Shown: positions 1 to 58,730 of the stretch, one piece after another
Layout of the letters: each line of letters opens with the position of its first letter
Numbering within the stretch: the stretch's first letter is position 1
DNA from: Magallana gigas
Taxonomy: Eukaryota
Assembly: GCF_963853765.1 (NCBI RefSeq)
Contig: NC_088859.1
Location: forward strand, 18,724,001-18,788,000
Reading direction: 5' to 3'
Length of the DNA: 64,000 nt
Position numbers and translations under genes: made by a program
The notes under the pieces: model-generated
The model's database searches: none
Told to the model about the DNA's origin: nothing
What the model saw: only the letters and a program-made list of their open reading frames with translations

Positions 1-543
1 CCCAACCGTACCACTTCTAGGTACTATACCATTTACAGAACCAGTTCTCGACAGAAAACTGCCACTTCCAGCTGGCACTCCTCTAACACCCTGTATACCA
101 CTTGCAGAACCAGTGCCCACTGGGAAGCCTGCGAAATTAACACTTCCACTCGGTATAACACTCGCAGAACCAGTGCCCACTGGGAAGCCTGCGAAATTAA
201 CACTTCCTCTCGGTATACCACTCGCAGAACCAGTTCCCACTGGGAAGCCTGCGAAATTACCACCTGCACCCGGTATACCACTTGCAGAACCAGTTCCTAT
301 TGGGAAATTTCCAAAATTACCATTTAATGGTCCTTGACCAGAGGGAAAATTTCCAGCTCCTGGTGAGGGTACGCCGGAAAACGGGCTGATCTGACCGAAC
401 CCTAACGGCTCGTCAAGACTCGACTTCAAAGTTGGTCTTTGGAAACCAGCAGGCAGAGACTGTTCGTTCTGGGGATCCTCAATAACTAAAGCGTGGACTA
501 AGGTCCCTAGAAACAATACTAAGGTAAGTCTGACCTGCCCCAT
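1..543 (-). CDS. Secreted Gly/Ser/Pro-rich repeat protein, 5' part (runs off left edge; 181 codons without a stop)
   Basis: ATG at 543 opens MGQVRLTLVLFLGTLVHA|LVIEDPQNEQ (signal-peptide-like), followed by 20-aa repeats NFAGFPVGTGSASGIPxGxx. The frame is open to position 1. A possible acceptor (ctcatttag) lies just upstream of the ATG. Confidence 0.8.
   Translation of the reverse strand, partial: MGQVRLTLVLFLGTLVHALVIEDPQNEQSLPAGFQRPTLKSSLDEPLGFGQISPFSGVPSPGAGNFPSGQGPLNGNFGNFPIGTGSASGIPGAGGNFAGFPVGTGSASGIPRGSVNFAGFPVGTGSASVIPSGSVNFAGFPVGTGSASGIQGVRGVPAGSGSFLSRTGSVNGIVPRSGTVG
92..320. repeat. Coding tandem repeat, 60-bp unit, about 3.7 copies
   Basis: Unit c(a/c)ct(t/c)gcagaaccagt(g/t)cccactgggaagcctgcgaaatta recurs every 60 bp; it encodes the 20-aa repeat. 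Confidence 0.9.
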
Positions 544-2269
544 ATTAAGTTAGTTACTAAATGAGGGACACCATTAAGCTTATTGAGAAGGAGACATTTG
601 AGAATTTGACGTCAAACGCATTACACGCTCAAGTGCAAAAGATCTATCACGTTCAAAAAAAAAAAAAGACGGATTGTTGTATAAGAGGTAGAGATGCCTA
701 GTTCTGTGACCGTAGCTTGATGTTTCCTTTGATGATAAGGAAGTATTTATTTTCTTATGAAAGTATAATCGCGTGTACGATACTTGTATGGTGGAATTCT
801 ATTGTTTGTTGACAGCTGTTTTGAATTTACATACATAACTGATTGTGACCTACATGTACAAGGATTGATAGATCTTTGTTAAATGCATATTTTTAAAAGT
901 TATTTTCAGTTTTTCCCTTCTTGTTTCTTCATGCTAATCAATAACATGCGGGTTCAACACATGATAAAAAAGTTTTGATAGCTAACAATTTATGTTTAAA
1001 CGATTTAACAAGTAAATATCGAGAAAAAAAGGTATAAACTCTTTTGTGAAGTCGTTTAATTTCATTTAGATAATAACTGTATCATTATAATAAATAAAAT
1101 ATGTAATACTAGTCATTCGTGGATCTAGAGGGGAGTGATGGGGGTGGGGTCGGAAAATTTTAATCTACATATTATTAAATTCACATAATACATTTACTAA
1201 ATTTACTTAGGACCCCCCCTTTCCCGGGCAAACAAAAATGTATTCAAATCATAGTACATGAAAGATCCTTAGGTACAATAACTGCACAAAAGCCATCGCT
1301 AAGGAATATGTATATAATTGTATAGGTTGATAATATCAACATACTTTTCAAAATTTAAAAGCTTTGGAAACACCATAGCCATCAACACCATTAAAATTGT
1401 TCTACATGTGATAAAGTTAAATGAAAACTTTGTTTTTAAATTGCTCACACTAAAAGTTCAACCGCAAATCAATCAAAACAACGAAACACATAAGAGGCAT
1501 CTCGATTGAGTTCGTTCGCTGATATTTTAATTGAATAGGTTGATGTACATTTTAATGAATGTCTTTACGTACATTTACGTATACATTGATCAACGGAACA
1601 ACAATTCATATACATGTATGAATCATCAATAACAACTTGTACATGCGAAGAAATAGTTTTGAGATCAGTTTCAACTCTTACATAGAAAAAATATTCAACA
1701 GACGGGCATTCGACAACCTGGACTTTATCCCTTTTTAGGCAGAGTAATATAAAAAAAACCCAAACTTTTATTACGTTCAGCGTCTTTCAAAAGGGTTCTA
1801 AATGAGAAATTAAAATAAAAAGGTCAAAAATGGTGCCTTTGTTTTGTACCTTATCAATTGCAACTTCTCGAGCCGCTCCAAGAAGCGGAAAACAAAATTC
1901 TAATTAAATGTTTTATTTACGTATATACGTGTATGCGTCCATGACATCCCCTTTCATTACCATCTATATAAAAGGGCAAAATGCATGCACAGGGTGTCCC
2001 AGAATATCTGATACCATTTACTCCTTGAATAACTTTTGAATAAATCTATTAAAAAAAATATCAAATGCATTTTCAGAAATGTACATGTATATGATGTAAA
2101 TTTCACGAACATTTATAAGTTTTTGTTAAATTGAGTTTATAAAAACACAACAAATTTAATGAGAGTGCTCCAAATGACACCTTTTTTTAATGAATAACAA
2201 CAATACGACGATGAGTAAAATTCTACTCAACAGCCACTGCACGGATCCTTTTCTTCAAAGTTCTCACTA

Positions 2270-3370: not shown

Positions 3371-4696
3371 CTACGTAATAAATATAAAGAAAATATATAC
3401 ATCTAAGCAACCCAACTTAACATGCATAAAACAGTCATTATTAATTTGAGCATTGTAAAGCAATGAATTAAATGACATTTATCCCCACGGCAAAAGAATA
3501 TATACATTATGTATAAACGTAACCTAAAGAAAATATGGAAATAACCGTGATCTGCGGTGTACATTTAAAACTTATTTATATCGCTGATTAGCTTTATAAC
3601 CTTGTAAATTAATCACGATAAACTATCAGGGCCTGAAAAAAATTAATAACAAAAAATATGTATAGTTTATGTGTATTGAGTTTTAATGATTAACGTCCAA
3701 TAGCGAGCTTTCATCCGAATTTATTAACAACTCTCGTATATATAAAATTATGATGTACTTTTTATTTGAATTTAAAGATGTAAAAATTTCGTGCAAAACT
3801 AAGATTCAGCAAGTGCATATTAAAAACAGTCTCTGAAAAAGTCCTTACTTCTCTTCCGCAAAAATAAGCGCAATTATCTTGCCCTCTCTCTTCAATCTAT
3901 TATTCTTTTGTCTTCATTTAATTGTTTTTGGATATTAACAAATAAAGTAGCACGTGGACAATCACAGGCGAGGTAATTCAAAGCTTTAGTTTTTGGTAGA
4001 GTCAGTAATTCATTTTTCTAAATATCCCCGAAATACGATTGAATAAATTTGTATTATTTGTGTGAAAGTTATTACAGTAACTGATACTCCTTTATATAGT
4101 TATATTGAAGAAAAATGCATTATAATTTTCTTTATAAAAAGTATACCATTATACGCCTCTGGGGATTTTTTTATCTAGAGAAAAGTATTTACTAAAATTT
4201 GATCTTTTTAGACCAAATATTGTTAAATTTAACGAGCACTTTTCCTCAAACAACGTGAGCTTATTAAGCAAGTTATGTAAATTTATAAGTATTGTTAACG
4301 AGAAGGCTAAACCTCCTGGTTATTAATCTACATAAAAAATTGTACTTTAATACTTCATATATATATATATTTTGTAGAGAACCATTATAATTGTTTATTT
4401 TTTTTTTTCTCTACTCACGCATAAAGTATATATTGTGTATACGTTTGTAATATTCTCTATGTTGTAAATTACAACCAAAGAGATAAAATAAACTGTTCAA
4501 CTGTTCAAATGTTATCCGTATAATTGTGTCATTAGAATGAAGGTAATCAACCTAATGAGGCGAAACTGTACATTGTATATGTAAATTGATATACTCGTAA
4601 ACATTGAGAACTTATGTCAATTTTATTAATTATTCAAATTACAGATGCTATTTTTGAAAAGTCATATAGTGTAAGATAATCACAGCTTATACTTAC

Positions 4697-5053
4697 TAGG
4701 GTTTTGAGTACATACTGCAATTTCTGCTCTAGTGACATTCCAAAGGTCGGATCATTCGTAGTGTTTTTCTCACTTTCCACACATTCCGTGACGTCAGCAA
4801 GAGACCCTCGAGTGCACGAGAACTTCTTCCGCATTACAGCTGCGGGGATCACCTCGGATCCATCCGAAATCACGTCCCGAGAGCCTCGTCTTCGCATTGC
4901 ATATTCGGTTATTTCTTCTAGCAAGTCACTGCTCGAGGCCCTCCGAAGAGGTTTCATCAGCCAAGAGTTCTTGATCGACTCAATGTCGTCTTTCGGTTGA
5001 AGTTTCAATTTTTTGGAGATCTCGATCAATGCGGACAAATGATCCTGGCTCAT
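4697..5053 (-). CDS. FAM167: FAM167-family protein, exon 1 (MSQDHL...LQYVLKTL); about 203 aa with exon 2
   Basis: First ATG is at 5053 (the ORF-track start at 5068 is GTG). Donor CTA|GTAAGT at 4696 is phase 0 and compatible with exon 2. The ORF-track tail VSISCD... is intronic read-through. Confidence 0.85.
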
Positions 5054-5193
5054 GATGGATCCACACACAACGTTAGCACACTTGTGGGGAGATTGTTACT
5101 CATATTTATGTTTACATGGGCGAGATTTTCTCGAGCTCGATCCGGAGTTTCCGGAGAGACAGGAAGAGTTTTAACGATGAATAGACAAGAGCC

Positions 5194-5204
5194 TTTATTA
5201 TATA
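5194..5204 (-). promoter_or_regulatory. Candidate TATA box for the FAM167-like gene
   Basis: TATATAATAAA on the minus strand about 140 bp upstream of the ATG; motif match only. Confidence 0.3.
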
Positions 5205-6012
5205 CATAATGAGCGTGTGTACTCTAAATGTACTTCACAAGATAGTCGTAAGTCGGACGTTGATAATCTTAAGTAGTCGCACTTTGTTTTATGGGAAAGA
5301 AAGTCAATTATGAGTCAGCAATTAAGTAAAAATGTGTAACGGAATAATACAATTTCGGATACATATGTTATATGTATAACATGTATATTATTTGAACTAA
5401 CCGCCCACTTGTCTATATTCCTGACTGTTTACAACTTCAAAGTAATCATTTTTAATTTCTATCAATTGAAAAAAATTGTTACTTATATTGCAGCTACAAT
5501 TAATTTCTCATAACTCCCTGTACATGTTGTTTAGAGAATACTAACATAAGTACGTGTGTACTTGCATTTAGACTCATACATGGTCGAATAAGCACGAGGG
5601 GTGGGGGTGGGGGGGGGGCACTTTGCTGCTGTTCTTTCTTTTAGATATATCCTGTGCCTTTAAAAGAATATTCTTTAGCTTTTAAAATAGTTAATCATTC
5701 ATAAAAGGACATTTTAACATTCGTAATTAATTTAATAGGTACATGTAACTGTTAAATTATTTATTCGTATAGTACAATAAACTGCAAATGTATATGCAAT
5801 ATTTGAAATGTCGTTTTAGCAATATTTAATCACACTGATGTTTAGTCACGTTGGTTTGCATTTAAACTGAAAACATAATTGTTGTTCTTAACGGTCATAG
5901 CCGGTAACCTACGAGTGATTTACATCGCTCCTCTGTATTTTGCAGATTTAGAAATGTAGTTTGCACCAACGTCTGTACCTACATAACGTAACTTCCGAAT
6001 TCGAAAATCGAA

Positions 6013-8745
6013 TCATTCAGAGGGGGCTTCTCGAGAATAGATAACATCAGATCCTTTTTCGCAAATAGCGACTTTTAGTATATGCTCCAACAACCCTGCA
6101 AGTTGTGCAAATTTCTCCGGTTCTTGCATCGCGTCGTTCATCGTCTCAATGCCGAACAGGTTTTTACTTGGATTGAAAAACGATGGAAGAAATCGTTTCT
6201 CTATGCTCAGTTTGTATCGTTTTAAGATTCTTTCTGCCCATTCCCTTGTCGTTTGATCCTTGTTCTGTTCTTCCTTTATTTCCGGTCCGGATGATGTCTT
6301 GTGACAGCTGTACCACTCGTGAAGAAGACAGGTTTTTAGGTGATAGGTGGTGACGTATCTTTTGACAGCCCTGCCATTATCATGGTCCACAATTTGCGGG
6401 AAATATCCCGATTCTATTAAGATTTTCAAAAGGATGTATCCCTTTTTAATTGGATATGGGATACTTTTGACGATGCTCTGCTCCAGATACGCAAATGAGA
6501 TTCGATAAAACAGAGTGAAGTCTTTCACATGAAATCGATCCGGTGTCTTCATGATCGCTGAAAAATTACTTTGTGAGATGTTTACACAGAAAACCTCGTC
6601 TAATTTTTGAAAATTTTTCGGTAACCAATTGTCAAATTCAAGAGCAGGAACAATGTCTACCGATGTTTCAAACATTTTCGCTTCGTGTCCGAAAACTAGA
6701 AATCTGAAACTCGAGATACTGCACCATATTTCTTTCAAAGATTGTAGAAGTGCAACATGGTTGAAAGATTCCTGTTCCTTCAGAATCAAGAGCAACTCTT
6801 CATTCGCAGTTTTATAGAAATCAAGAAGAAACAATTGGCTGTCAAGAAAGCCGTCTTCCGTGATATATTTTGCATATATAATTTTTTCTTCTTCTGATTT
6901 CAGTTTCACCATCACGAAATTTTCTGGGTACTCTTCATTTTCAACAGGTTCGAATGACTTCGATAAATGTGACAAAATGAATAAATAATCAAACTCGTTT
7001 GGGATTTTAACTTTAGTTCCTTCGTGCATACTTCCCGCAAGCTTCAAATGACACGAAAATTGAGGATTTTTTGCACCTAGTCTTTCAGCCAACAAATTGA
7101 ATAATCGATGGAACATTTCTGGAATCCAATGATTGTCTTGTAGAGGATAGAACAATCCCATCTCGGTTAAAGTCAGGGCTTTTTGCCAACAAGATTGAAT
7201 GGAAGTTTTGTGCAAATTCAGGTGATCGAGATACATTTCATGGTGTAATATCTCATTTTCTTTTCTCATATATCTCAAGTGGGGACAGGCAATTAATGGA
7301 TCAGCGCCACTGCATTCTAGATTAGGATACTGCAGTTCAAGGCAATCCAGATCCTTAAATCGTTCTTCTTCGATTAACCAAGAAAAATGCGAAAAATTTA
7401 ACATTTCTGCAAACATTGCTGGCGTGTTACCAGACTTATCCTTTATAGTATAATCACAGCCAACTTGCAATAAGGTCTGCGCGGCAAATTTCTTCTTGAA
7501 CCACACAGCCCAATGCAGGGCGGTGGATCCGTAGTCGTCCACTACGTTTAAGTCATGGTTTCCGTCCAGATAAAAATGAATGGTAACATGTAGCATGTTG
7601 TAGTGTCTAGTTGCCCAATGAAGGGCTGTAGCACCAGTTTTAGTCCTCTGCATGACGTCAGCACCACAGTCGAGCAGGGCAACGAGAATGTCCAACTCGT
7701 TCGTCAAAGTGGCCATATGAAGAGGTGAAATCCCGTCTGTACTTCGTTCATTCACACTGACGCCGGCTTTGACTAGGTACGTGATAACCTCTGCCCTACG
7801 TTCTAGTTCGGTTTGACTATATTCCATGTCCACTTGTTCTACGGCACAGAAAATTTCATTTTTCCCTCTCGCATCTTTGTTATTCACGATCACACTTCGT
7901 TTCAAGAGTTCTTCCAGCGTTTCAACTGTTGTATGTTTCGAAATGACGGCGTGATGGATCACTGTTTTACCGGAATCATCTTTTCCGTTGATATCGAGTC
8001 CTTTTTCTATCAGCATATCCAATATCTCTTGAACACCTTCTAAATGTGCATTTTCTGCAAGGTAGTGAAATATCGACTCTCCCAATCTGTTTTTGACGTA
8101 GATGTCGGCTCCATTTTCGATAAGATATATCATGGACTCGGCGTCTCCAACACCAGCCATGATGTGTAAGGGAGTGTCGCCATTATTGTCCCTACTATTC
8201 ACAGGTACACCCCTTTCTAGCAATTTTTTCATCAATGAACATCTATCTTTTTCTTGACACTTTGAAACCAAATGTAGAAAACTTCCTCCGGTAAGGAGAT
8301 CTTTCTCCAAAACATTTAACACTCTGTCTATCAATTGCACCAAAGCAAGATTCGGGAGTACGCCTTTTGAGAAGAGATGAAGAAAGTCCGTTTGTCCGTT
8401 GATGTTCTTGTAATTGATCTTGGCTCCATTCTGGATAAGAAAGTGTACGATTTCTGTTGTGATTTCTGAGCTGCTTTTTCGTTCACCGAGAGCTTGTAAC
8501 AGAACCGTTTGTTTGAAACAATCAGTATGGTTAACGTCTGCTCCCGCTTCTGTTAGCTGACGAACGAGATTTACCGTGCGATTTGGAGAAATAATGACGT
8601 CATAAAGCCCTTGTCCAAGAACACGAGTCTTGTCTCCTTGAGTCATATCGTCGCGTACATCTCGTAATGATTGGATAAGGTGCATAATTTCCTTGGTATC
8701 ACCCGTGGAGATGGCTTCCTTGAAATTGTTTTTGAAATCCTCCAT
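6013..8745 (-). CDS. Ankyrin-repeat cGAS-like receptor (cGLR; Mab-21/cGAS nucleotidyltransferase), 910 aa, single coding exon
   Basis: About 11-12 ANK repeats (GDTPLH, GISPLH, GATALH, GSTALH; about 7390-8620). These are followed by AGSMHEGTKVKIPNEFDY (GS-x11-EFD), VDIVPA (third carboxylate), RISFAYLE and TYHLKT of the Mab-21 fold. An acceptor ctttaAG lies 5 nt before the ATG. Confidence 0.93.
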   Translation of the reverse strand: MEDFKNNFKEAISTGDTKEIMHLIQSLRDVRDDMTQGDKTRVLGQGLYDVIISPNRTVNLVRQLTEAGADVNHTDCFKQTVLLQALGERKSSSEITTEIVHFLIQNGAKINYKNINGQTDFLHLFSKGVLPNLALVQLIDRVLNVLEKDLLTGGSFLHLVSKCQEKDRCSLMKKLLERGVPVNSRDNNGDTPLHIMAGVGDAESMIYLIENGADIYVKNRLGESIFHYLAENAHLEGVQEILDMLIEKGLDINGKDDSGKTVIHHAVISKHTTVETLEELLKRSVIVNNKDARGKNEIFCAVEQVDMEYSQTELERRAEVITYLVKAGVSVNERSTDGISPLHMATLTNELDILVALLDCGADVMQRTKTGATALHWATRHYNMLHVTIHFYLDGNHDLNVVDDYGSTALHWAVWFKKKFAAQTLLQVGCDYTIKDKSGNTPAMFAEMLNFSHFSWLIEEERFKDLDCLELQYPNLECSGADPLIACPHLRYMRKENEILHHEMYLDHLNLHKTSIQSCWQKALTLTEMGLFYPLQDNHWIPEMFHRLFNLLAERLGAKNPQFSCHLKLAGSMHEGTKVKIPNEFDYLFILSHLSKSFEPVENEEYPENFVMVKLKSEEEKIIYAKYITEDGFLDSQLFLLDFYKTANEELLLILKEQESFNHVALLQSLKEIWCSISSFRFLVFGHEAKMFETSVDIVPALEFDNWLPKNFQKLDEVFCVNISQSNFSAIMKTPDRFHVKDFTLFYRISFAYLEQSIVKSIPYPIKKGYILLKILIESGYFPQIVDHDNGRAVKRYVTTYHLKTCLLHEWYSCHKTSSGPEIKEEQNKDQTTREWAERILKRYKLSIEKRFLPSFFNPSKNLFGIETMNDAMQEPEKFAQLAGLLEHILKVAICEKGSDVIYSREAPSE

Positions 8746-9014
8746 CGTTACTTAAAGAAATTCAGTTTAATGAACTATTACATAATTATATACAAGTAAA
8801 AGTACAATCTGCATATCTCATTATTTAACTTGCAACGTTTTATTATATAGAAAACAGCAATAATGTGCATATGTTTTAGCCAGTCATTAGAAACCTCATG
8901 AATTTTTATCGTCTTTCCTCTTTACATTCTAAACTCAATATATAACTGAACTCTTATGTACACTGTAATATAGACGTTTCAAAAAATGTAGACGTAAGCA
9001 AAAAATTTCAATTA

Positions 9015-9251
9015 TTAGGCCAAAATAAAATTATTGTTTGTGTAGAATTGCCTCCCGGCTCATTAAAATACCCCCGCTGATAATTTTTTAGCAAAATATA
9101 AAAGAACTTTTTTATATATGGAGATTTCTATTTCTTACCATTTTTTAAAATTATTAATTAAACTTTAAGTTTGAAAAAAAAAATCCCTCCTGGGTCTAGA
9201 AAAACCCCTAGGCGGCAATTCCAAACAAACATTTTTTAAATGATGGCCTTA
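9015..9251. mobile_element. Degenerate short TIR element (MITE) upstream of the cGLR
   Basis: ttaggccaaaataaaattattgtttgtgtagaattgcc versus ggcaattccaaacaaacattttttaaatgatggcctta: an imperfect inverted repeat of about 40 bp. Confidence 0.45.
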
Positions 9252-9605
9252 GCCTACGATATGTATATGGCAGGGTTTTTCAAGTTCAGTGAAATCGTAC
9301 ATGCATATTTTATTTACTAATGAATAAAGTTCCGTGCCAATGATTTTAAATCAGGCTTTTAAACGACATCTATTTATAAATATGGATATTTTAAACACGC
9401 TTTACTGTTCAACGTACAATGTACATTTTGGTTTGCATCTGCAAGAATTGATTATCATCAAAACACTGAACAATTATGCCAAAAACCGACTGCGATTAAA
9501 CAAACATATTTTACTTACCGTTTCACTTTGAAATGGAAAGTCTCTTAGAAATGAGTCATGGGTCTGGATACGGCAAACAAAGAAGAGTAAGACTCCAAGG
9601 AAGGA

Positions 9606-9751
9606 NNNNNNNNNNNNNNNNNNNNNNNNNNNNNNNNNNNNNNNNNNNNNNNNNNNNNNNNNNNNNNNNNNNNNNNNNNNNNNNNNNNNNNNNNNNNNNN
9701 NNNNNNNNNNNNNNNNNNNNNNNNNNNNNNNNNNNNNNNNNNNNNNNNNNN
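9606..9751. other. Assembly gap (146 N)
   Basis: Run of N. Confidence 1.
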
Positions 9752-13760: not shown

Positions 13761-16183
13761 TTAGATGTTAGAAAACGTGACATAATATACACACCGTATT
13801 GTAATGAGCCTTCCTGTCATACTTATCGTCAATGTTGTCACTGGCTTTTTCTTAACGTTGCACTGTTGTTACTTGTTACACGTACTTGATTAAAAAAAAC
13901 GGGAATGTAGAAGACAACAAAGTAGAATTTTAGTATCACAAGTCGGAGATCTCTTGAAAATGAGAACGTTGAAGGATATAAAACCTAAGAAAAGTTATCA
14001 CGCCTGAAACTGCAAACTCGATGTCTGCATACCATAAATTAAATCGCAATATCTTATTTTGACCTGCTTGATTTGAGGTAAAATCCGAATATTGTGCAAT
14101 TCTCACGAAGAGAAATACCCGGTATTAAAGCTCTATTATATATAAAGATCGAATGATAGAGATGCATTTTTTTAAAAATATGCATGTATGTAAATTAAAT
14201 CGGTATACTATTAAACACACTGTGTAAGATTATAGTAACATATATATTACATGTAATGATCACAATTTTCTCTAACAAATATAATAAATTATATGTTAAT
14301 AATACCTCGTTATTTTTAGATATGCTTGGTACGTGGTGGTAAAATTTATCGGTTTTCACACGTGTGCTATATACACGTAATCAGCTAATACGGTGTATAT
14401 GCACGTCTTCTTTCTTAAAAAAAATCAGGGGTAGTGTGCTGGAGTAGTTTCTTCGTTTTATATTTATATGAATTCTCTAGCTGGTCTTTGAGTACAGGGT
14501 GTAAATAAAAAAGGTAAGTCTTTCACCCCAGATGTCAAATACAGCTTGCCCACAACATTATAACAATGCAAGGCAATTAAGTCCTTAAGAATTCCCCGGG
14601 GGGGGGGGGAGGCGGCAGAATTTTCCTGGATAATGCAAAAACATAGGCACATAGGACGTGTCAAATCCGTCGCACCCAGGATGTTTATACGAAAAATGTA
14701 CCTGTCAATCTTTATACGAAGGCATCCGTACACGTGAGATGAAGTACTGCTTTCTCGGACAAAACAACAACGGCACATAAATACATGTACTTACTTTTCT
14801 TTTTTGTTATAGCTAAAATTTTATTTTCTTATCAGTGCAAGTTTGTTTCAGTGCTAGCGATATTGGCATTACAGGCCATGAACACTATGTATTTGTGGTC
14901 TTTATTAGCATGATCATAATTTTCAGTTTTTCAAAATTATCCTTTTTTGTGTTAAGAATTAAAATTTTGTTAGTGTTTTCAAAAAAAGTGCAAGCGCAGA
15001 AATTTGATTGAACACGCCCATCATTTAAGCATGCAACCATTCCCTTGCTCTTAAGGTTTACCACTCTGCTACAAAATTCTCAAAATAATTCTTTGATGTA
15101 AATTTTCACAGGTCACTATATTTTGTGATCAAAAAAATATATTTATTTGAATGCCTAATGCGGTTCTTGTATTCTCAAAAAATTGATGATCAGCATATTC
15201 ATGATAGGAAGAAAACATCACACACTGTTCAGAAAAAAAGAACTATATTTTTATTTTCAGAGAATAACATGAAAAACATACCATATATAACATCAATAAA
15301 TGGTATCACAATCAATAAAATGTAGGGAGGCGGTGCTTCTTATGTCATAATATTTCCTTTAATTTATTTAACGTTTATTTGTACGAGTTACCTCTCCTGA
15401 AAAACAAAGGTAGAGAAGTTATATCATGATATAAATGAATATATTTATTTTCTTTGTAAAACGAATATAAACACCATTTTGGCCATATTTTTCTAAATGC
15501 TTTTTCTAAATAATGACACCTGATAAAGATTTTTGGGCTGTATTTCCGGAAATTAGGTTGTTTGAAACAAGGATTATCAAGGTTCAAGTTTAAATTACAT
15601 TATGTGACCTGCTGCAGCGCTTTACAGTCTTCAAGTGCATCGTATGTGGGATTTTGACGTTCAAAATACAAGAAACTTTACATCCTGATACTAGCTATCC
15701 GAAGAACGCTAAAATGTAACAAGATCCGCATTTATCTTTAATCTCTCTTATCGGAATATCTAACCTTAAAGATAGTGTGTCTACGTACAAGCCTTCCGTT
15801 TTCACGCTTAGTTACAAATACATGTACATCATGCACGCTCATCACGAGGAGCTTAAATTTTCGAAAAAGTGAATATCTTTTGTTGGTTGTTAAAGAGTGT
15901 ATAACAAGGATGTTAATTTATTGTGAAAACACTTATTTTGATCGATTTATGCGTCTAGACTCCATTAATAAAAGGACTGAAAAAACTTCTATAACTAAAC
16001 GCATTTTCGTATTAAGTCTAAAATGCTAAACCCATTTATACCTAAATTTTTCAAGTTAGCACGGCTATATGGTAACCTTAGTGTTGAAAATTTCGACAAA
16101 AAATGTCATGTTGCTAAATGACATCTATAACTTGTATATATAAATAACAAAAGTTCGTAATTTAAATTGGCCTCATTTATACT

Positions 16184-21845: not shown

Positions 21846-24121
21846 TTGTTCTGTTCTTTTCTACTTTTAACATATTAGCAGAGGTTTATAAAAAAGACCA
21901 GGGATAGAATACAAGAGAAAAAAATCTACTTACTTATATTGAAGCATGGTAAAGCTGGTATAATGTGTATCAGAACAAATTTCTACTTCACAAATCGTAA
22001 CACTCTATGTCTGTGATGCATATAAACACTGGCAGCTGATGCAAAACGAGATATATCGTATAAGAAAAAAACCTTCTCTGACGTAATCGATTTTAATCTG
22101 ACAGCGCATCATAGATTATTTTCCCCGTTTTAGAATTCAATACCAGACTTCACATCGGAAAAACATCGATTATATTTTTTTTCAACTTACAATATAAATG
22201 TATGACATTTTGATTATCAGCTTATTGATTCTAAACTTAGATATACTACATAGATACCATATTAATTTTCTTGCCTATACATGTAAAACGAGTGCAAATA
22301 ATGAAGAATAACAACTCAGAATTAAAATATACTGATTGTCATTACGTATTAAACCAGCAACATTTTTGTCCTGCAGCTCTTTTATGATATACATTTTTTC
22401 TCGCGTAAATAGTTATCAAGCAGTGTTCATTGGTTTCGCTGTATATAAATGAAAATGTCAGTATGTTAATCTAAAGAGTTCAGATAGCGATAGTTGATTT
22501 GCAATTGAATAATAACACATTAATACGATGAAGGGCACCATGAAGTATTGCTTTTCATAAACTTGCCGAGAATTGGTGGATAATGCCATCAATATTATTT
22601 TCATTGGTCAGTCATTCAATTTTCCTTTTTTATATTAAATATTACGGCTGCAACATATTTACTGTAATTAACAAGAAAATGGAAAATAAGCTTCATGAAC
22701 GAGTCTATCATACTTAATTAGAGAGGTCAAATGGCTGAAGCAATTTTTTTTTAGACTATTTTAATCTCCTTAGAAAGAAAAGCTCTGTACTTCGATGTAT
22801 AAAATGTAAAAAATTATAACATAAAATATTCGAATATTTTCTTTACTAAAATATTACTTACGGCCAAAATTAATCCTCCTTTTCCTTACCCTGGCACAAT
22901 GATGTAGCGGTTCATGTTACATAGAAACCGACAAGTATAGGACATGTACACTTGTGATGTCTGCATGTATTCTAAATGATTCATTTATAGGTCATATCGC
23001 AGATGTATGCAGCTTTATACAACACCATCTAGCAAATATATTAGTACAATGAACACATTTACACCACCAAAACGTGATTCGCGTCTTACTAGCTTATGCT
23101 AGTTGTCCAAAAATATATTAAGTTTGGTAATTCAGCGTTCAAAATTGAGATCAGAAAGATATTTTCACCAAGCCCTTTAAGGATATTGTACTTTGAGGGT
23201 AATATAAAATCGTCTTGGTAGTAAGTAAAGCACAGCACCAATTGTAAATTAATTCGTTAATTGATTGTTGACAAAAACTTATCAAATTGAGTCTCGTTAA
23301 AGCTATGCATGCCCAGATGATTTATTAAGTTTGTTTACAGCTGTTGAATATTTGATAATTCTATGTCACTAGTAATGTAAAGCAATGTAATTGTATTGAA
23401 TCTGGGACCAAATGGTTGATAAACATCTAGCATATGCATGCGTTCAGTGAAAATCAAATGGGAGTGAAAGCAAATCCTATGATACTTTCACCTGCAGGTT
23501 TATAGAAATTAAGAGAATATGCTAATTAAATTGATGGAACCGAGGACGCTAAAGATAATAAACATGAAATCAATGAAGAAGTACATCAAAGACATCTGTG
23601 AGTCACAGAACTAATCATTTATAGGGTAGCCGACATTCCCACCAACGTCCCAAAATGTCAGGTATATTAATGGCAATAAAGGCGCAATGGAAATTATAAA
23701 CCCTTTGAGTTCATACGAAGATGCCATTAAAGACCATCATTTAGAATCCCTTGAAAAAGAAACAAAAAAATTGTCATTCCCCAAGGAATTTGGAAGACCA
23801 TTGGACAGATTACACTGCCAATGCCAGAAGTAGCCCGCTTAAAAATACCAAATGACAAGACGTAATGGCATACAATAGATAACGTTTTTTCTGTTAGCTT
23901 TGACGTCATTATATTCCAAGCAGTTTTGATTGCGAGGTGGGTGTACTTTGTTTTGTAAATCAAAAAACACAAAAACTGTTTAATTTGATTATTGTTGAGC
24001 CCAATGTTCTCGACATACTTAATGCTGCCGATCACTATGTACTTATAAGATTCGCACAATGAAGTTAACTTTATCAATTTTTCCATGGAGAAGGTTTACT
24101 GCTTCATACTTGTGGGTTGTA
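21846..24121. repeat. Segmental duplication block 'GPCR upstream', left copy (paralog about 43920-48750)
   Basis: Collinear similarity, e.g. ggtttataaaaaagaccagggatagaatacaag, cactggcagct, ctctgacgtaatc, agaatcccttgaa and gattcgcac...gttaactttatcaatt. The right copy carries an extra ~2 kb near 46400-48300. Confidence 0.85.
21934..21947 (-). CDS. GPCR 1 first coding micro-exon (14 nt, MLQY-N)
   Basis: ATG CTT CAA TAT AA|GTAAGT; phase 2 joins T GAT CTG AAC in frame; 890-bp intron. Confidence 0.8.
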
Positions 24122-24660
24122 GACGTCACAAATTGATATAAACTGTTTCAAGGATGAATCACATATAGAAGAATTTGGGGGCCCAATAAACAAAAAATCG
24201 TCCAAAATGTGTACCATCCGAGGTATCCCAAACTTTTTACAAGCAATCCACTCTAAAGCTGTGCTAAAGGATTCAAATTTGGAGCACGATATAGAACACC
24301 CCATTGGGAGACACTTGTCATAATAAAACCGGTCTTGAAACTGAATTCCTAGAAGTTCATGGTCATCTGGATGAACGGGTAATATTCGAAATCCTGATGC
24401 AATATCCGTTTTTGCTAGCAAACATTCTCTTCCCATAGTTTTAATAATACTAATTGCATCATCCACAGTTGTATAGAACACTGAACATAAATCGTCTGGT
24501 ATAAAATCATTTATAGAACTGCCCTCCGGATAAGACAAATGATGAATGAAACGAAATTCATTTACCCCTTTTTTAGGAACTAAACCAATTGGCGAACACT
24601 GAAGATTTTTGAAAGGAGGAACAACAAAGGGGCCTGCAATTCCGTTCATGGATATTTCTT
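24104..24660 (-). CDS. Reverse transcriptase fragment of a tyrosine-recombinase retrotransposon (Ngaro-type DIRS)
   Basis: GIAGPF, SPIGLVPKK, FRFIHHLSYP, KTDIASGFR, LPMG and HILDDF motifs. Truncated at about 24122, with no RNase H or YR downstream. Confidence 0.9.
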
Positions 24661-25079
24661 TTTGTAGTGTTGTTTTTTATCTTTACATTAATCTGAGCCG
24701 CTATAGGAGTTGATAACAATTGCTGTTCATCGTCTGAATCTACCTCATCACTATCACTGGAATCTGAACTATCTAAGCCAGATTCACTTTCACCCGAGGA
24801 GGTACCTGATGAGACTGATCGTACACTGTCCCTTTTTCGCTTACGGCCTCTCTGGCGACTGCGACCCCGTTCCTCAGTGGGTGTCTCTTCATTTTTCTCC
24901 TCCTCATTTCTCCTCTCTTCTCTCAAAGCTTGCTGTACGTGCTCTGTTACTGCTGCCACCAGCTGGGGTTGAATCGTCTCCGCCTGATTTTGTGCTGCCT
25001 GTTCTGCGGATCCAACTGCAGCTTCCACGTTGTTCACTCTCCTTCCCCTCGGACGCCTTCCGCCGGATGGGACACTCAT
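24660..25079 (-). CDS. gag-like ORF1 N-terminus of the same element, fused to RT by an internal deletion
   Basis: Basic, then Ser/Asp-rich, then PIAAQINVKIK (resembles the DIRS/Ngaro ORF1 P..x.V..KIK motif). It abuts LQKEISMNGIAGPF in another frame. The ATG is directly preceded by gcattttAG. Confidence 0.6.
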
Positions 25080-25912: not shown

Positions 25913-26539
25913 CTACCCACCATTGTCTATGGATTTTAGGCAAGACACAATACTGGCCCGCAAATTGTTATAATACTTTATGTTACCCTTGTCATTCAAA
26001 TGGACCCCATCTGGGAGAAAAACCAGCTGCTGGCTCTCTTTAGACCAAAAACCAGTCAGACAAAAGAAAAATGTGCCATCTACATTCATAAGGTAGCTTG
26101 ACATCGTTCGGTTTAATTCGTCCACCCTAGAATTGAACCATGGTGTGTCCACCTTGTAACGTACCGGAAAGGTAGGAGGTAGCCTATACAGCGTTTGTAA
26201 CACTTCCACTTTTTTAACAGATTTTCCATATCTCAGGGTAATTACAAAGTCTACCAGCTCCCTAAATATGTCATTCAGAGATTTATTCCCATCACATACC
26301 GGTAAGTCATTTGATACCCCTCGTATCAAAACAACACTGGTCTGTAGTTGAGTGACGTAATCTAGGCCAAGCGCGCGATTCTGCTGAAGGGATGCTCCTC
26401 TTTTACCCACGAAATGGACAGCAACTTCATCTGTGCTTAAATTAAAGTTATTAGATACACGATGGTCATCACTCCTCGCGATAAACTGTTCCAAACGGCA
26501 GACAAATGAATGTCCAAGAATTATAACACAATGCGGCAT
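25913..26539 (-). CDS. SGNH/GDSL hydrolase, 208 aa, retrotransposon-borne
   Basis: Block I LGHS, block II G, block III GVSND and block V DGVHLN. The ORF is intact and co-oriented with the gag/RT fragments. SGNH ORFs are a known accessory of animal Ngaro elements. Confidence 0.85.
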   Translation of the reverse strand: MPHCVIILGHSFVCRLEQFIARSDDHRVSNNFNLSTDEVAVHFVGKRGASLQQNRALGLDYVTQLQTSVVLIRGVSNDLPVCDGNKSLNDIFRELVDFVITLRYGKSVKKVEVLQTLYRLPPTFPVRYKVDTPWFNSRVDELNRTMSSYLMNVDGTFFFCLTGFWSKESQQLVFLPDGVHLNDKGNIKYYNNLRASIVSCLKSIDNGG

Positions 26540-51328: not shown

Positions 51329-52229
51329 TCATAGTCTGTCTTGTATTGCTGTTGAGAAGCGCTTAAAACAGTTACGAGCGCGCAGTGCCGCGATGAAATA
51401 TATAAAAGGGCTCAAAATAGAGTTTAATAACCATGCGAACTGCGCAGCCACCAGAAAGTTTCTTTCCAAGTTACGTAAACTGTGCAAAGACAAAATATAA
51501 CACAACAGAAACAGAACGGCCGAGGACATATAGGCAAAGAGAATGACAGATGTCACCAGAGACATTTTGATCAGAGTGGTTTCAACGTTGTGCTTGCTCA
51601 AAGAGCGCCTTTTGAGTCTATGCATTTTCTTCACGTGGAAAGTTAAAATCAGAAGGGTAGGGATGACTATTAGGTAGACCCGGAAAGTTATGATTACGTA
51701 GGTCGAAGACTGTATGCCAGACTGGTAACGAAGCAAGAAGTACAAAACGGCAAAACAGGCACTCAGAATCCACAAAAGTGCTGATGCACCAAATACCTGT
51801 CGTTTGGTGATCTCGTTAAACTTGATTGGCTCTGAAACCATGTAACTTCGGAGTCCGAACAACAATATCACGTGGGCTGCACTCGAATGAGTGGCACCAT
51901 AAAAGACAATCAAAAACACCGTGCATGGTACATTTTCCAGCTGAAAGTTCATATTCTCTGTGATCGCATGAGCCAAATACAGACACAAGTTCACGAGATC
52001 CGTGAATATTATAGAGCCGATAACATAAAACACTGTGCGATGATATGCCTTGTCGAACACGATTTTGGAGAGCGTGAGAACATTTCCGAGTATTCCAAAA
52101 ATAGATATAAGAACAACAAAAATGAGATGGTTGTCTTCCAGATAAACTGGAACATCGTTTCGTACACTCATCAGAACAGAAGTATCATTTAAGAAAAACA
52201 TTGCCTTCTTTGAAGTGCTGTTGTGCTCA
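51329..52229 (-). CDS. Class A orphan GPCR 3, exon 2; 304 aa with exon 1
   Basis: 7TM paralog; acceptor ttacAG|T at 52230, phase 2. Confidence 0.92.
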
Positions 52230-52427
52230 CTGTAATATAAAAAAAAGACATACACTACATTTTAAAAAAAGAAGAATATTTTTGTGAATTTGCATGTCGA
52301 CTTACATGGAGGACAATATACATGCGCGGATTTTTTTTCAGGGGATGGGGGTGGTCGGCGTGTCTGGTCCCCATTTTGGGAAATTTAGATTTCTTAAATT
52401 TACTTATACATTGAATGCTTATTTTTT

Positions 52428-56473: not shown

Positions 56474-58019
56474 TTATTCCAGGTACTTGTAAACCCTGAT
56501 CTCGTTTGTATCAACATCCCCGATCCACAGATTACAGCTATCATCTACTCCTAGGGCTCGAATCCTTCTCTCTAAGCTGGAAGATGGAAGGCGCAGAAGA
56601 AGACAGAGGAATCTTCCGTCTTTGTCCAGCATGTGGACGCTATCATCCGTGTGGTCATTGTTGTCGCATACCAGGATGTTTCCCAAGACATCGGTGCAGA
56701 TTCCACTGGGTTCAAAAATGGTTCCCGGTGGGTGGCCTCCCTCTGCGTCGTAGTCAAAGCGGTGGTTCCCGGTTATACCTACGGCCACCACCACTTGTTT
56801 CTCCCAGTCGGACACCACGATGTCACCGTTGATGTTCTCAGAAAGATAATGTGGTCGGCTGTACAGTCGCTTCTTGCTGTCTTCGTGGAATTCGTACGTC
56901 TTCAGTTCCTTCCCCGAGGCGTCGTACCGCACCACCTTGGCTCTCTGCTGTGTGTCGTCCATCATTCCTACCAACAGGTCGTCCGTGGAGTGAGAGACGT
57001 GAATACTGATCGGTGTCCATTCCTTGAATTTTATCAAAGTCTTCTTCTTCCTCCCTGAGAGTAGTTTGGAAATGCTGTCATCATACTGGTCGATAAACAG
57101 CAGCTCGTCTTCCAGGGTCACCGCGTGGAAACCTGTCGGCTGCTGCCTGAAATGGTGGGTTTTTATTTTATGGAGCTCGTTACCCTTCGGGTCGATTTCC
57201 ACCAGATTGCCCAACTCATCGCCCACCCAGGTTTTGTTAGATTTCATGCAGGAAATATGGCGGCACCTATCGATATCTGGAACGTGAATGGCTTTCACTT
57301 TCTGGATTCTCATAACCAGTTTGGGTTTCTTTGGGTGAGTTTTCTGTATGGAATTTTTTAGATACTTGGGAACGGTTAATTTTCCAAACAACGCCTCCAA
57401 GGTTTCGGCGTCCATTTGCCCGGATCCTTCCTGGAATGTTGGGTGGTCGTGGTGGAGCTTCAGGCTGGGGATTTCTTTCAATTTCTGGATCCTGTTATAT
57501 ATACCCATCAAATCACCGGACTCCATGTGCTGTCCTTTCTTTTCAAACTCGTCCAACACCTCTTGTAGTTGAGCAAGGTGTTCGTTCATCTTGTGAACCT
57601 CATCCTGGTACTCGTGCATCAAAACGTGTTCAATATCCGTCAGTTCCTTCATATTATTAGACAAAATGTCGTCCAAAATATCCTTCATCTTCCTGATTTT
57701 AGACGTCATAGTTGTTCTGACCTGCGACAAAAGATGCTTACTGGTGTCTTGGTTTTTACCAAGTTCTTGTACCACTAGACGACAGTTTGGAATGATGGTG
57801 TCCTTGATTTTAGCAATCTCCTCGTGGCACTTATCTCTCATGGACACGACCATTTCACTTGCCGCCACAAAGGAATGGCCGTGGTGCTTCTCGGTGCTGA
57901 TGCACTTCATACATACTGGCATCTCGCACTGTTGACAGCACAGCACTCCGCTGTCTTGGTCGGGGTGGACTTTGCACTTCATTTTCTGAGTTGGTAAACG
58001 ATCGTCACTTACACATAGC
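56474..58019 (-). CDS. B-box type 2 / coiled-coil / NHL beta-propeller protein (RING-less TRIM2/3-like); ATG at 57982 gives 502 aa
   Basis: CKVHPDQDSGVLCCQQCEMPVCMKCISTEKHHGH, a heptad region, and NHL repeats (RPHYLSENINGDIVVSD, PSGICTDVLGNILVCD). Acceptor ctttgtAG at 58020; the ORF-track start at 58069 is intronic. Confidence 0.92.
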
Positions 58020-58730
58020 CTACAAAGAAAATAATTGATAGGTCTATCATAATTATTCCTGAATTGCAATACTGTGTATCAGCTTGAATATCCAAAGACC
58101 TCATGAGTTTCACTTAAAACAATTTAATGTCGACTTGCAAACACGATGAATTATGTATTTAGAAAAAAGTTCGTGTAAAATCGATATGTTTATGAAATTG
58201 TCTAGAATATGCTCAATTTTTATATCTATATAGAGGGAAAAGTGATCAAGTGAAGCCGTCTAATGCAGAAATCGATTATGAGTAGAATGAATACAATGAC
58301 GGAAGTTTTGCAATGCTAGCATTTCCAGATCCCTTTATTTCCGTAACTAAATTGCATGCATTTTCAAAAAACCTAGCAGTACAATTGAAGATCGATTTAA
58401 TATTCACACTAACTAAATTGCTCTATATGATAAATCACCGATCATTCCCCAAAATACTGAGTATCATAGGGTGAATAAATTGTTATAGTCTAGAAGAAAA
58501 AAACATTATAGGCCTAGTCCATGATTATTATGTAAATTGAACAAAAAAACTACAACAATAACAGGTTAATACATGTATGATGATGTAAATATACAGTACT
58601 GTACAAACTCAAACTCAAACAAAACTTGGGTTATGAGAATTCAACAACTTTTTAACACTCGGGTGATCTGTTTGTAAATAATTAAGAATTCCGGTGACAC
58701 CATGACGGGGGGGGGGGGGGGGGGGGTCGA

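Follow-up and report, generated by a model that had tools for sequence, protein, structure and literature searches.

The cGAS-like receptors (cGLRs) of bivalves are known to form an expanded set, some members of which carry ankyrin (ANK) or TPR extensions (Li et al. 2023). Proteins that join ankyrin repeats to a cGLR have already been catalogued in that work (its Fig 1C, Fig S2A, and Table S2). Every cGLR ligand identified to date is dsDNA or dsRNA, and two oyster dsDNA sensors are among these cases (Li et al. 2023). Nucleic-acid-sensing cGLRs have isoelectric points (pI) above 8.5, and acidic cGLRs have been proposed to sense ligands other than nucleic acids (Li et al. 2023). Of 140 cGLRs screened, only 15 proved active in vitro and were chosen for in-depth analysis (Li et al. 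2023), so an intact catalytic motif does not in itself imply measurable activity. Activating ligands have been identified for a minority of animal cGLRs, and no biochemistry of an ANK-cGLR, including its ligand or product, was found in the literature searched. The shrimp proteins LvMab21-1 to -3 were reported to bind neither dsDNA nor dsRNA, to make no cGAMP, and to activate IKK-epsilon directly (PMC12928593).

A preliminary description of a 64,000-nt stretch of Magallana gigas DNA (hereafter the window) proposed that positions 6013-8745 encode an ankyrin-armed cGLR that has an intact catalytic triad and lacks a vertebrate-type Zn thumb. Its background statement, that bivalve cGLRs are expanded and in part extended by ANK or TPR repeats, agrees with Li et al. 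(2023). Sequence, profile, and fold evidence agree on the proposed identity, and an open reading frame indeed occupies these positions. According to the ORF list and its translation, this frame lies on the minus strand and is single and unbroken over 910 amino acids. A frame of 910 codons in DNA of ~33-40% G+C, combined with the Pfam E-values given below, rules out a chance feature. The whole ORF is covered by strand-specific polyA RNA-seq reads and by RNA contigs, one of which spans both the ANK and the enzyme halves, and the 5′ UTR is spliced. The gene is therefore transcribed, a point on which the preliminary description had let its proposal depend. Thus, the oyster gene is genuine, intact, and transcribed.

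The interior of the coding sequence is free of read joints, and the coding sequence of the C. virginica orthologue is likewise a single exon. At the upstream end, matches to contigs L001 and X7 both stop at 8825 and are followed by 24-25 unmatched letters that are identical in the two contigs. This places a splice acceptor at ~8826-8830, where CT at plus-strand positions 8829-8830 reads as AG on the minus strand. The upstream exon carrying the 5′ leader was searched for within the window and not found. At the downstream end, read and contig depth persists to ~5692-5743 and is zero over 5170-5517. Contig L001 is collinear with the window from 8825 to 4480 at 96.6% identity, and so extends past the read-supported 3′ UTR. 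The features of the gene and its product are collected in Table 1.

Table 1. Features of the oyster ANK-cGLR gene and its predicted protein, given in window positions
Feature	Positions	Strand	Evidence
Complete single-exon CDS of ANK-cGLR	6013..8745	-	910 codons plus stop at 6013-6015; ORF list and translation
5′ UTR portion of coding exon	8746..8828	-	RNA contigs L001, X7
3′ UTR, minimum extent by reads	5700..6012	-	Read/contig depth; contig L001
Ankyrin array, residues 1-465 (N-cap, ~11 repeats, C-cap)	7351..8745	-	Pfam Ank_2, AF2, Foldseek, phmmer
Hinge, residues 466-481	7303..7350	-	pLDDT
Subfamily-specific N-terminal extension of enzyme, residues 482-515	7201..7302	-	AF2 domain model; conservation
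Mab-21/cGAS nucleotidyltransferase core, residues 516-765	6451..7200	-	Pfam PF03281; PDB profile search; fold
Mab-21 C-terminal helical lobe, residues 766-895	6061..6450	-	Pfam PF20266; motif TTYHLKT
G571-S572, activation loop	7030..7035	-	Invariant in 12 orthologues
E584-F585-D586, first two metal-binding acidic residues	6988..6996	-	Invariant in orthologues
D697, third catalytic Asp	6655..6657	-	Aligns to 'svDiVPa' Asp of Cv-cGLR1 and porcine cGAS
TTYHLKT motif, Y801-T805	6331..6345	-	Aligns to SYHLK/SYHVK of cGLR1 and cGAS

Comparison with other copies indicates that the gene evolves under purifying selection (dN/dS 0.18-0.24). The higher value was obtained against an allelic RNA contig, and the lower against L002, a more diverged copy at dS 0.23 for which every segment remains below 0.35. 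We also considered whether the binding surface of the array evolves under diversifying selection and rejected this, given that putative surface positions are only slightly less conserved than framework positions among oysters (0.76 versus 0.85), and that dN/dS is below 0.35 in each ANK segment against L002. The putative binding-surface positions are neither hypervariable nor markedly conserved.

The genomic surroundings do not constitute an immune gene cluster, as no further cGLR genes and no STING genes occur within the window. Its other content includes a B-box/NHL ORF, a GPCR, and retroelement fragments, and an Rfam scan of the window gave no matches. The neighbors of the C. virginica orthologue (two adh_short genes and TMEM220) have no convincing match in the window. 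The ANK-cGLR gene itself looks to be single-copy.

Structure modeling shows the C-terminal 395 residues in a predicted cGAS/cGLR fold with all metal-binding and NTP-contacting motifs intact. Pfam recognizes the Mab-21 nucleotidyltransferase domain (PF03281) at residues 574-760 with an E-value of 7.8e-9 and Mab-21_C (PF20266) at residues 773-866, both above the gathering cut-off. The best match in a profile search of the PDB is C. virginica Cv-cGLR1 (8gjw, E 3.4e-17). The AF2 model of the enzyme half has a pLDDT of 81.9, and its Foldseek fold match has an E-value of 7e-16. Overlay on cGAS and cGLR structures, a check suggested in the preliminary description, gave a Z score of 28.1 with mouse cGAS (4o6a; VIA-align, rmsd 3.3 Å over 335 residues) and 26.1 with Cv-cGLR1 (rmsd 3.5 Å over 337 residues).

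The active site is complete by the cGLR pattern (G-S, [E/D]-h-[E/D], then one more [E/D]), and its residues align with the catalytic ones in cGLR1 and cGAS. The pattern GS-x11-E-F-D reported earlier, with its third Asp at 6655-6657, is found where it was placed: eleven residues separate G571-S572 from E584-F585-D586, and D697 completes the triad. None of the catalytic residues varies among 12-13 homologues from oysters and mussels, and Y801, K804, and T805 are likewise invariant in the orthologues. The Zn-thumb insert H(X5)CC(X6)C is missing: in the profile alignment with porcine cGAS it is precisely this stretch that falls in a gap, and residues 697-800 contain just one Cys and two His. This upholds the original claim that there is no vertebrate-type thumb.

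In front of the enzyme lies an array for which Pfam Ank_2 gives an E-value of 1.3e-38. In the AF2 model, 13 helix pairs precede residue 465, mostly at pLDDT 80-95. The array comprises 12-13 repeats, and the earlier count of about 11-12 is consistent with this once the caps are included. The ankyrin array has a pI of 5.6 and, by Foldseek and phmmer, resembles generic ankyrins, namely ankyrin-R/B and DARPins. Residues 468-481 are predicted to be disordered (pLDDT <50). Docking of the array against the enzyme is hinted at by a single measure, the full-length model's pTM of 0.78. A search of the ESM Atlas for the inter-domain arrangement of the full-length protein gave no full-length match.

The segment joining the two halves had been described as a Cys/His-containing linker (LECSGADPLIACPHL...HHEMYLDH), and this text is present at residues 476-508. 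In the domain model, residues 476-515 fall outside the part that aligns with cGAS, and their pLDDT is ~80 except over the first ten. The subfamily-specific extension within this segment, ~35 residues long, is modeled as a beta-hairpin and two helices and is the best-conserved segment among oyster orthologues (74-78%). A conserved Zn-binding motif was considered for the Cys/His linker and rejected. The subfamily keeps C487, H508, H512, and C565 without exception, but C478 and H489 differ even between mussels, and most of the wider clade lacks the linker segment. As judged from these alignments, the linker is not a conserved metal site.

Intact orthologues exist in other oysters and in mussels, and an exhaustive search recovered 177 sequence clusters of relatives at E≤1e-30. 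Long N-terminal extensions are the rule among these relatives. ANK arrays were found in 53 of 53 sampled clade members, Pfam detects both ANK and Mab-21 domains in all 12 homologues scanned, and the named members are all bivalves. Word-index searches with the domain and with its profile, run to find close relatives in which the enzyme half stands alone, gave ANK-fused proteins or fragments. The lone exception was a distant protein (P0103, E 2.6e-5) with Mab-21 domains and no ANK match. Across the clade, identities of the ANK and Mab-21 halves are correlated (r 0.69), and both halves average 23-24%. Because the halves diverge in step, the fusion is old and obligate, and domain shuffling was rejected on the same correlation and the equal mean divergence.

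The catalytic motif is retained in 129 of 141 clade representatives, although their Mab-21 domains are only ~24% identical on average, and this argues for catalysis. Among representatives covering each site, conservation is 141/141 for the Gly and 135/141 for the Ser of G571-S572, 139/141 for E584, 137/141 for D586, and 143/145 for D697. In the C-terminal lobe the corresponding counts are 115/120 for Y801, 117/118 for K804, and 142/142 for K774.

The best explanation, which we consider probable when taken as a whole, is that the protein, one of a large clade of ANK-cGLRs that spans the bivalves, synthesizes a messenger and is triggered through the ankyrin array by something other than a nucleic acid. 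No signal peptide or transmembrane segment is predicted, and the protein would be cytosolic. Once activated, the enzyme half would produce a cyclic di- or oligonucleotide second messenger, for which a STING-type receptor is the most plausible reader. Activation is probably not through dsDNA or dsRNA because the enzyme half is acidic and has no Zn thumb. The Mab-21 half has a pI of ~6.0 (5.1-7.3 across homologues); pI serves as no more than a rough indicator, and the C-terminal lobe taken by itself is basic. Our best guess, from sequence features, is therefore that the trigger is a protein or other non-nucleic-acid partner bound by the ankyrin array, with the conserved last repeats and the linker extension coupling binding to the catalytic lobe. 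A more specific version, in which the ankyrin groove captures a protein, whether a factor from a pathogen or a “guardee” of the host, and the last repeats and linker relay the signal, is put forward only tentatively.

The preliminary description had offered three roles for the array, which sequence cannot separate: a protein-ligand sensor in place of nucleic-acid sensing, an autoinhibitory clamp, and a reader of the enzyme's own product. The acidic pI and the missing Zn thumb favor a trigger other than a nucleic acid. We regard it as rather unlikely that the array is mainly a clamp, whose last repeats and linker would hold off the activation loop until released by modification, cleavage, or a competitor. 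This possibility draws on the conservation of the junction, where ANK residues 321-465 and linker residues 466-515 are 70-78% conserved among oysters versus 58-68% for the catalytic core, and on the pTM, which despite the disordered hinge hints at a fixed domain arrangement. Moreover, in 4rlv and 5y4d, the ankyrin-B structures that match best, the groove is occupied by the protein's own autoinhibitory segment. However, rigid coupling of a sensor to its enzyme predicts junction conservation equally, such that the alignments would fit a regulatory clamp and a fixed interface between sensor and enzyme alike. A clamp and the best explanation could also hold together.

Alternatively, the Mab-21 domain might bind dsRNA or dsDNA while the ankyrin array localizes the protein or recruits partners, and we likewise think this unlikely. 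In its favor are the precedent of the cGLR ligands identified so far, those of two dsDNA sensors from oyster included (Li et al. 2023), the dsDNA-sensing Cv-cGLR1 as the closest solved relative by profile, and the pI of 8.95 for the C-terminal lobe by itself. These points are countered by the acidity of the Mab-21 half and of its NTase lobe (pI 5.3), which contrasts with values >8.5 in nucleic-acid-sensing cGLRs, by the absent Zn thumb, and by an identity to Cv-cGLR1 of only 18-19%.

It seems quite improbable that the protein is a nonenzymatic scaffold that acts through protein contacts only, with the ankyrin array as a docking platform. The shrimp Mab21 paralogues provide a model for such a protein, as they reportedly activate IKK-epsilon yet neither bind nucleic acids nor make cGAMP (PMC12928593), and the majority of cGLRs screened in vitro were inactive (Li et al. 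2023). Nevertheless, a scaffold has no need of a metal-binding triad, yet G-S, E-x-D, the third Asp, the Tyr of the SYHxK motif, and K774 are near-invariant.

In the OAS pathway, the ankyrin repeats of RNase L bind 2-5A. By this analogy, which is the one point in its favor, the array could bind the nucleotide product of its own enzyme and thus combine sensor, synthase, and reader, but we consider this extremely improbable because the array matches generic ankyrins and DARPins, with RNase L missing both from the 50 Foldseek matches listed and from the 60 best that phmmer gave for the ANK half, because there is no effector domain for product-bound repeats to switch on, and because a diffusible messenger read by its own synthase has no obvious signaling logic.

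With a protein-binding module on an acidic enzyme, ANK-cGLRs are obvious candidates for sensing ligands other than nucleic acids. The oyster gene is a convenient entry point because it is transcribed and held by purifying selection, with clear orthologues in species from oyster to mussel, and its intron-free coding region should be easy to clone. The wider clade supplies a natural series in which variant ankyrin arrays are joined to a constant catalytic core. If the ankyrin groove does capture a protein, the oyster receptor would be the first defined protein-sensing animal cGLR.

Among known systems, RNase L also pairs an ankyrin array with nucleotide second-messenger signaling. Its array is on the effector, whereas that of the oyster protein is on the predicted synthase, and the similarity detected between them extends to the generic ankyrin fold only. 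The shrimp Mab21 proteins are also invertebrate Mab-21 family members, and are proposed to act via protein partners, outside nucleic-acid sensing (PMC12928593). They were reported to make no cGAMP, whereas the clade of the oyster protein has kept its catalytic site despite deep divergence, which argues for enzymatic signaling. Vertebrate cGAS has in common with the oyster protein the bilobal Mab-21 NTase fold, the GS...ExD...D triad, and the SYHxK motif. Because the oyster protein lacks the Zn thumb and the basic disordered N-terminus, and its surface charge is acidic, it is not a cGAS orthologue. Cv-cGLR1 has the same fold and catalytic motifs despite its low identity, but belongs to a basic, DNA-responsive sensor class; the acidic oyster ANK-cGLR adds a conserved N-terminal extension and 465 ankyrin residues.

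The closest parallel is with the ANK-cGLRs of Li et al. (2023), which have the same N-terminal ankyrin array, C-terminal cGLR core, and complete active site. One of their Table S2 entries with Ank_2, CAC5408938.1 of Mytilus coruscus, is a family member 31% identical overall to the oyster protein. That work only lists the architecture and singles out neither the oyster gene nor its orthologue group; the old model of the C. virginica orthologue, a 401-aa fragment, was not found in the parts of the supplement searched. The picture drawn in 2023 is unchanged, and our contribution is a well-validated candidate together with family-level numbers. The architecture was already known in bivalves, and the oyster gene adds a sound, uncharacterized member.

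The ankyrin-cGLR (ANK-cGLR) gene of the oyster is an unbroken 910-codon open reading frame running from ATG to stop, by a wide margin the longest in the window's ORF listing, and its G+C content (40%) compares with about 32-36% in its surroundings. The preliminary description had reported an ankyrin array joined to a nucleotidyltransferase core carrying GS-x11-E-F-D and a third Asp. Translation places every residue it named exactly where it had been located, which confirms that observation. Neither a signal peptide nor a hydrophobic segment was found in the protein.

Features of the ANK-cGLR gene and of the remaining window (identities are to oyster orthologues)
Feature	Window position	Residues	Strand	Evidence or remark
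ANK-cGLR ORF	6013-8745	1-910	-	ATG to stop
Ankyrin repeats		N-terminal half	-	Pfam Ank_2, E 1.3e-38
First ankyrin repeats		1-160	-	identity 52-53%
Last ankyrin repeats		321-465	-	identity 68-74%
Linker extension		466-515	-	identity 74-78%
Linker text LECSGADPLIACPHL...HHEMYLDH		476-508	-	translation
NTase core		516-765	-	identity 58-68%
G571-S572	7030-7035	571-572	-	translation; exactly 11 residues, then E584
E584-F585-D586	6988-6996	584-586	-	translation
Mab-21 nucleotidyltransferase domain		574-760	-	Pfam E 7.8e-9, 36.3 bits (cut-off 24.1)
D697	6655-6657	697	-	translation
Mab-21 C-terminal domain		773-866	-	Pfam E 6.1e-6
Separate expressed exon	4634-5131		-	overlaps a 144-aa ORF
Short patches of RNA reads	9000-9350		both	loose ends at 9101, 9133, 9210, 9249
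Masked N run	9606-9751			
Reverse-transcriptase fragments	24104-25079		-	
GDSL-type esterase match	25913-26539		-	
Rhodopsin-family GPCR ORF	51329-52255		-	intronless, 308 aa; 7tm_1 E 2.5e-9
B-box/NHL ORF	56474-58069		-	single ORF, 531 aa; local G+C 44%

Structural modeling agrees with this assignment. A full-length AlphaFold2 model built with 12 homologues (mean pLDDT 81.9, pTM 0.78) shows 13 helix pairs through residue 465, then a hinge predicted to be disordered (468-481), and then the enzyme; its pTM hints at a defined arrangement of the two domains in the predicted structure. Folded alone, the enzyme half (residues 476-910; pLDDT 81.9) superimposes on mouse cGAS with Z 28.1 (rmsd 3.3 A over 335 residues) and on the oyster dsDNA sensor Cv-cGLR1 (8gjw) with Z 26.1, and Foldseek E-values reach 7e-16. 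A search with the family profile reached Cv-cGLR1 with E 3.4e-17, and many cGAS entries scored around 1e-11. In the profile alignment, the catalytic residues are matched by the three acidic positions and by TTYHLKT, the local form of the SYHxK motif, and the family has a gap exactly at the position of the cGAS zinc thumb. Between D697 and residue 800 there are just one Cys and two His, so the absence of a vertebrate-type thumb that had been noted earlier holds as well. The so-called Cys/His linker (residues 476-515) lies outside the cGAS-aligned core; its model, with a pLDDT of about 80, consists of a beta-hairpin and two helices.

The gene is transcribed. Coverage of the ORF by raw reads from polyA RNA-seq and by RNA contigs is complete, with nearly all reads in one orientation and no joints inside it. 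L001, a public RNA-derived contig of 4,324 nt, encodes a 910-aa protein 97% identical to ANK-cGLR and follows the window collinearly from 8825 to 4480, its first 25 letters being unmatched; a second RNA contig stops matching at 8825 with the same unmatched letters. Because of this shared break and the lack of internal joints, the coding sequence is read as a single exon following a spliced 5' leader. A search of all 64 kb for the 24-25-nt leader of these two independent contigs, allowing two mismatches, gave nothing beyond a chance-like 13-nt match at 14347. The exon that supplies it may be hidden in the masked N run, may be polymorphic, or may fall outside the window. The dN/dS ratio is 0.24 against L001 (dS 0.05) and 0.18 against L002, a more distant RNA-derived copy (dS 0.23), with every segment at or below 0.35 in the latter comparison. 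ANK-cGLR is an expressed, constrained, cytosolic protein.

Several observations concern these transcripts and their neighborhood. In L002, which is 92.6% identical and belongs to the P0006 cluster (25 members, several 720 aa long), an additional base follows codon 712, at CDS position 2136/2137 (about 6609 in window coordinates), and puts the Mab-21 C-lobe in an ORF of its own. Past the shift dN/dS against the window is still 0.04, so the additional base is either an error that recurs in assembly or a frameshift that arose very recently in a paralogue or sister species. In three of four RNA runs compared, coverage peaks at the separate expressed exon just downstream of ANK-cGLR, on the same strand; a loose end common to its reads at 4697 suggests a splice site, and its ORF has no Pfam match. 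L001 passes collinearly from ANK-cGLR into this exon, which may reflect read-through or a long 3' UTR. On the other side, the patches at 9000-9350 have reads in both orientations and many loose ends on both sides, and an RNA contig joint omits 9039-9158. They look like a dispersed repeat or small mobile element and not part of the gene.

Within the 64-kb window, ANK-cGLR stands alone, with clear one-to-one-looking orthologues and no other cGLR or STING genes. The remaining ORFs are a TRIM-NHL-like protein, in which a B-box zinc finger is combined with an NHL repeat, a rhodopsin-type GPCR, and remnants of retroelements. Among these remnants, the esterase match lies upstream of the reverse-transcriptase fragments on the same strand, an order reminiscent of a decayed LINE whose ORF1 bears an esterase.

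Word-index searches returned only ANK-plus-Mab-21 proteins as relatives. Identities to the window protein, taken over the Mab-21 half or full length, are 66-68% in Crassostrea virginica (XP_078318936.1, cluster of representative P0002), whose CDS is also a single exon, 58-60% in Saccostrea cucullata, and 29-44% in several species of Mytilus; Pinctada imbricata has a 535-aa model without part of the enzyme core. Across the oyster and mussel homologues from these searches, there is no variation at the five catalytic residues or at Y801, K804, and T805. Because the claim of an obligate fusion partly depends on the absence of stand-alone relatives, an exhaustive HMMER search was run with an enzyme-half profile, yielding 1,689 representatives at a cut-off of E<=1e-3, of which 177 reach E<=1e-30. 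Among the best 150, at least 250 residues precede the enzyme in 98 of the 146 newly returned representatives (median 416), and the N-terminal parts are ankyrin arrays in all 53 sampled clade members. Five of ten representatives looked up bore a species name, in every case that of a bivalve: Sinanodonta woodiana, Ruditapes philippinarum, Mercenaria mercenaria (two), and Mactra antiquata. The two halves are equally diverged in the 53 sampled members (mean pairwise identity 23% for ANK, 24% for Mab-21) and their divergences are correlated (r 0.69), which points to one old fusion that then co-diverged and disfavors repeated domain shuffling.

Two clam members of the clade exceed 2,200 residues: P0132 (R. 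philippinarum, 2255 aa) and P0140 (M. mercenaria, 2287 aa). The enzyme-half profile matched two stretches in each, the best at about 1560-1940 and 1810-2175, respectively, and a Pfam scan covered residues 1-650 and 1-783, which precede the first Mab-21 match. Their architectures are accordingly much larger and perhaps multi-domain.

What might activate such an enzyme? Sensors of dsDNA and dsRNA among cGLRs have a pI >8.5; in acidic members of the family the groove is negatively charged and the trigger is probably not nucleic acid (Li et al. 2023, PMC9980059). The Mab-21 half has a pI of 6.0 in the window protein and 5.1-7.3 across homologues; the NTase lobe is at 5.3, and only the C-lobe is basic. 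This acidity and the missing zinc thumb favor a non-nucleic-acid trigger, as judged from sequence. Because an ankyrin solenoid is a protein-binding module, the array would be the natural candidate site for receiving it. The segment identities fit a conserved ANK-enzyme coupling interface and a more changeable distal ankyrin end, and an array acting as an autoinhibitory clamp fits this pattern equally well; canonical ANK binding-surface positions give no signature in either direction. The protein could instead be a scaffold without enzymatic activity, the role reported for shrimp Mab21 proteins (PMC12928593). This role is hard to reconcile with the metal-binding triad: G-[S/T], [E/D]-x-[E/D], and the third acid are kept in 129 of the 141 representatives covering all five sites, in a clade so diverged in its Mab-21 domains. 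The functional speculation in the preliminary description is partly plausible. Its suggestion that the array reads the enzyme's own product finds no support, RNase L being absent from the 50 Foldseek matches listed and the best 60 sequence matches of the array.

cGLRs are a large receptor family with an extreme radiation in bivalves (Li et al. 2023, bioRxiv 10.1101/2023.02.22.529553; PMC9980059). Single-domain proteins make up 87%, and in some members TPR or ankyrin modules are added (Fig 1C, Fig S2A, Table S2; PMC9980059). CAC5408938.1, listed in that Table S2 with an Ank_2 domain (Li et al. 2023, PMC9980059), is P0011, which belongs to the family studied here, so both the architecture and the family had already been catalogued. 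Our literature search found no ligand, product, or role assigned to any ANK-cGLR. The oyster protein is a well-validated example of this published architecture. By model it shares the fold of vertebrate cGAS, whereas the zinc thumb present there is absent from it. RNase L reads 2-5A; the oyster ankyrin array is instead nearest to generic ankyrins and DARPins among the matches listed.
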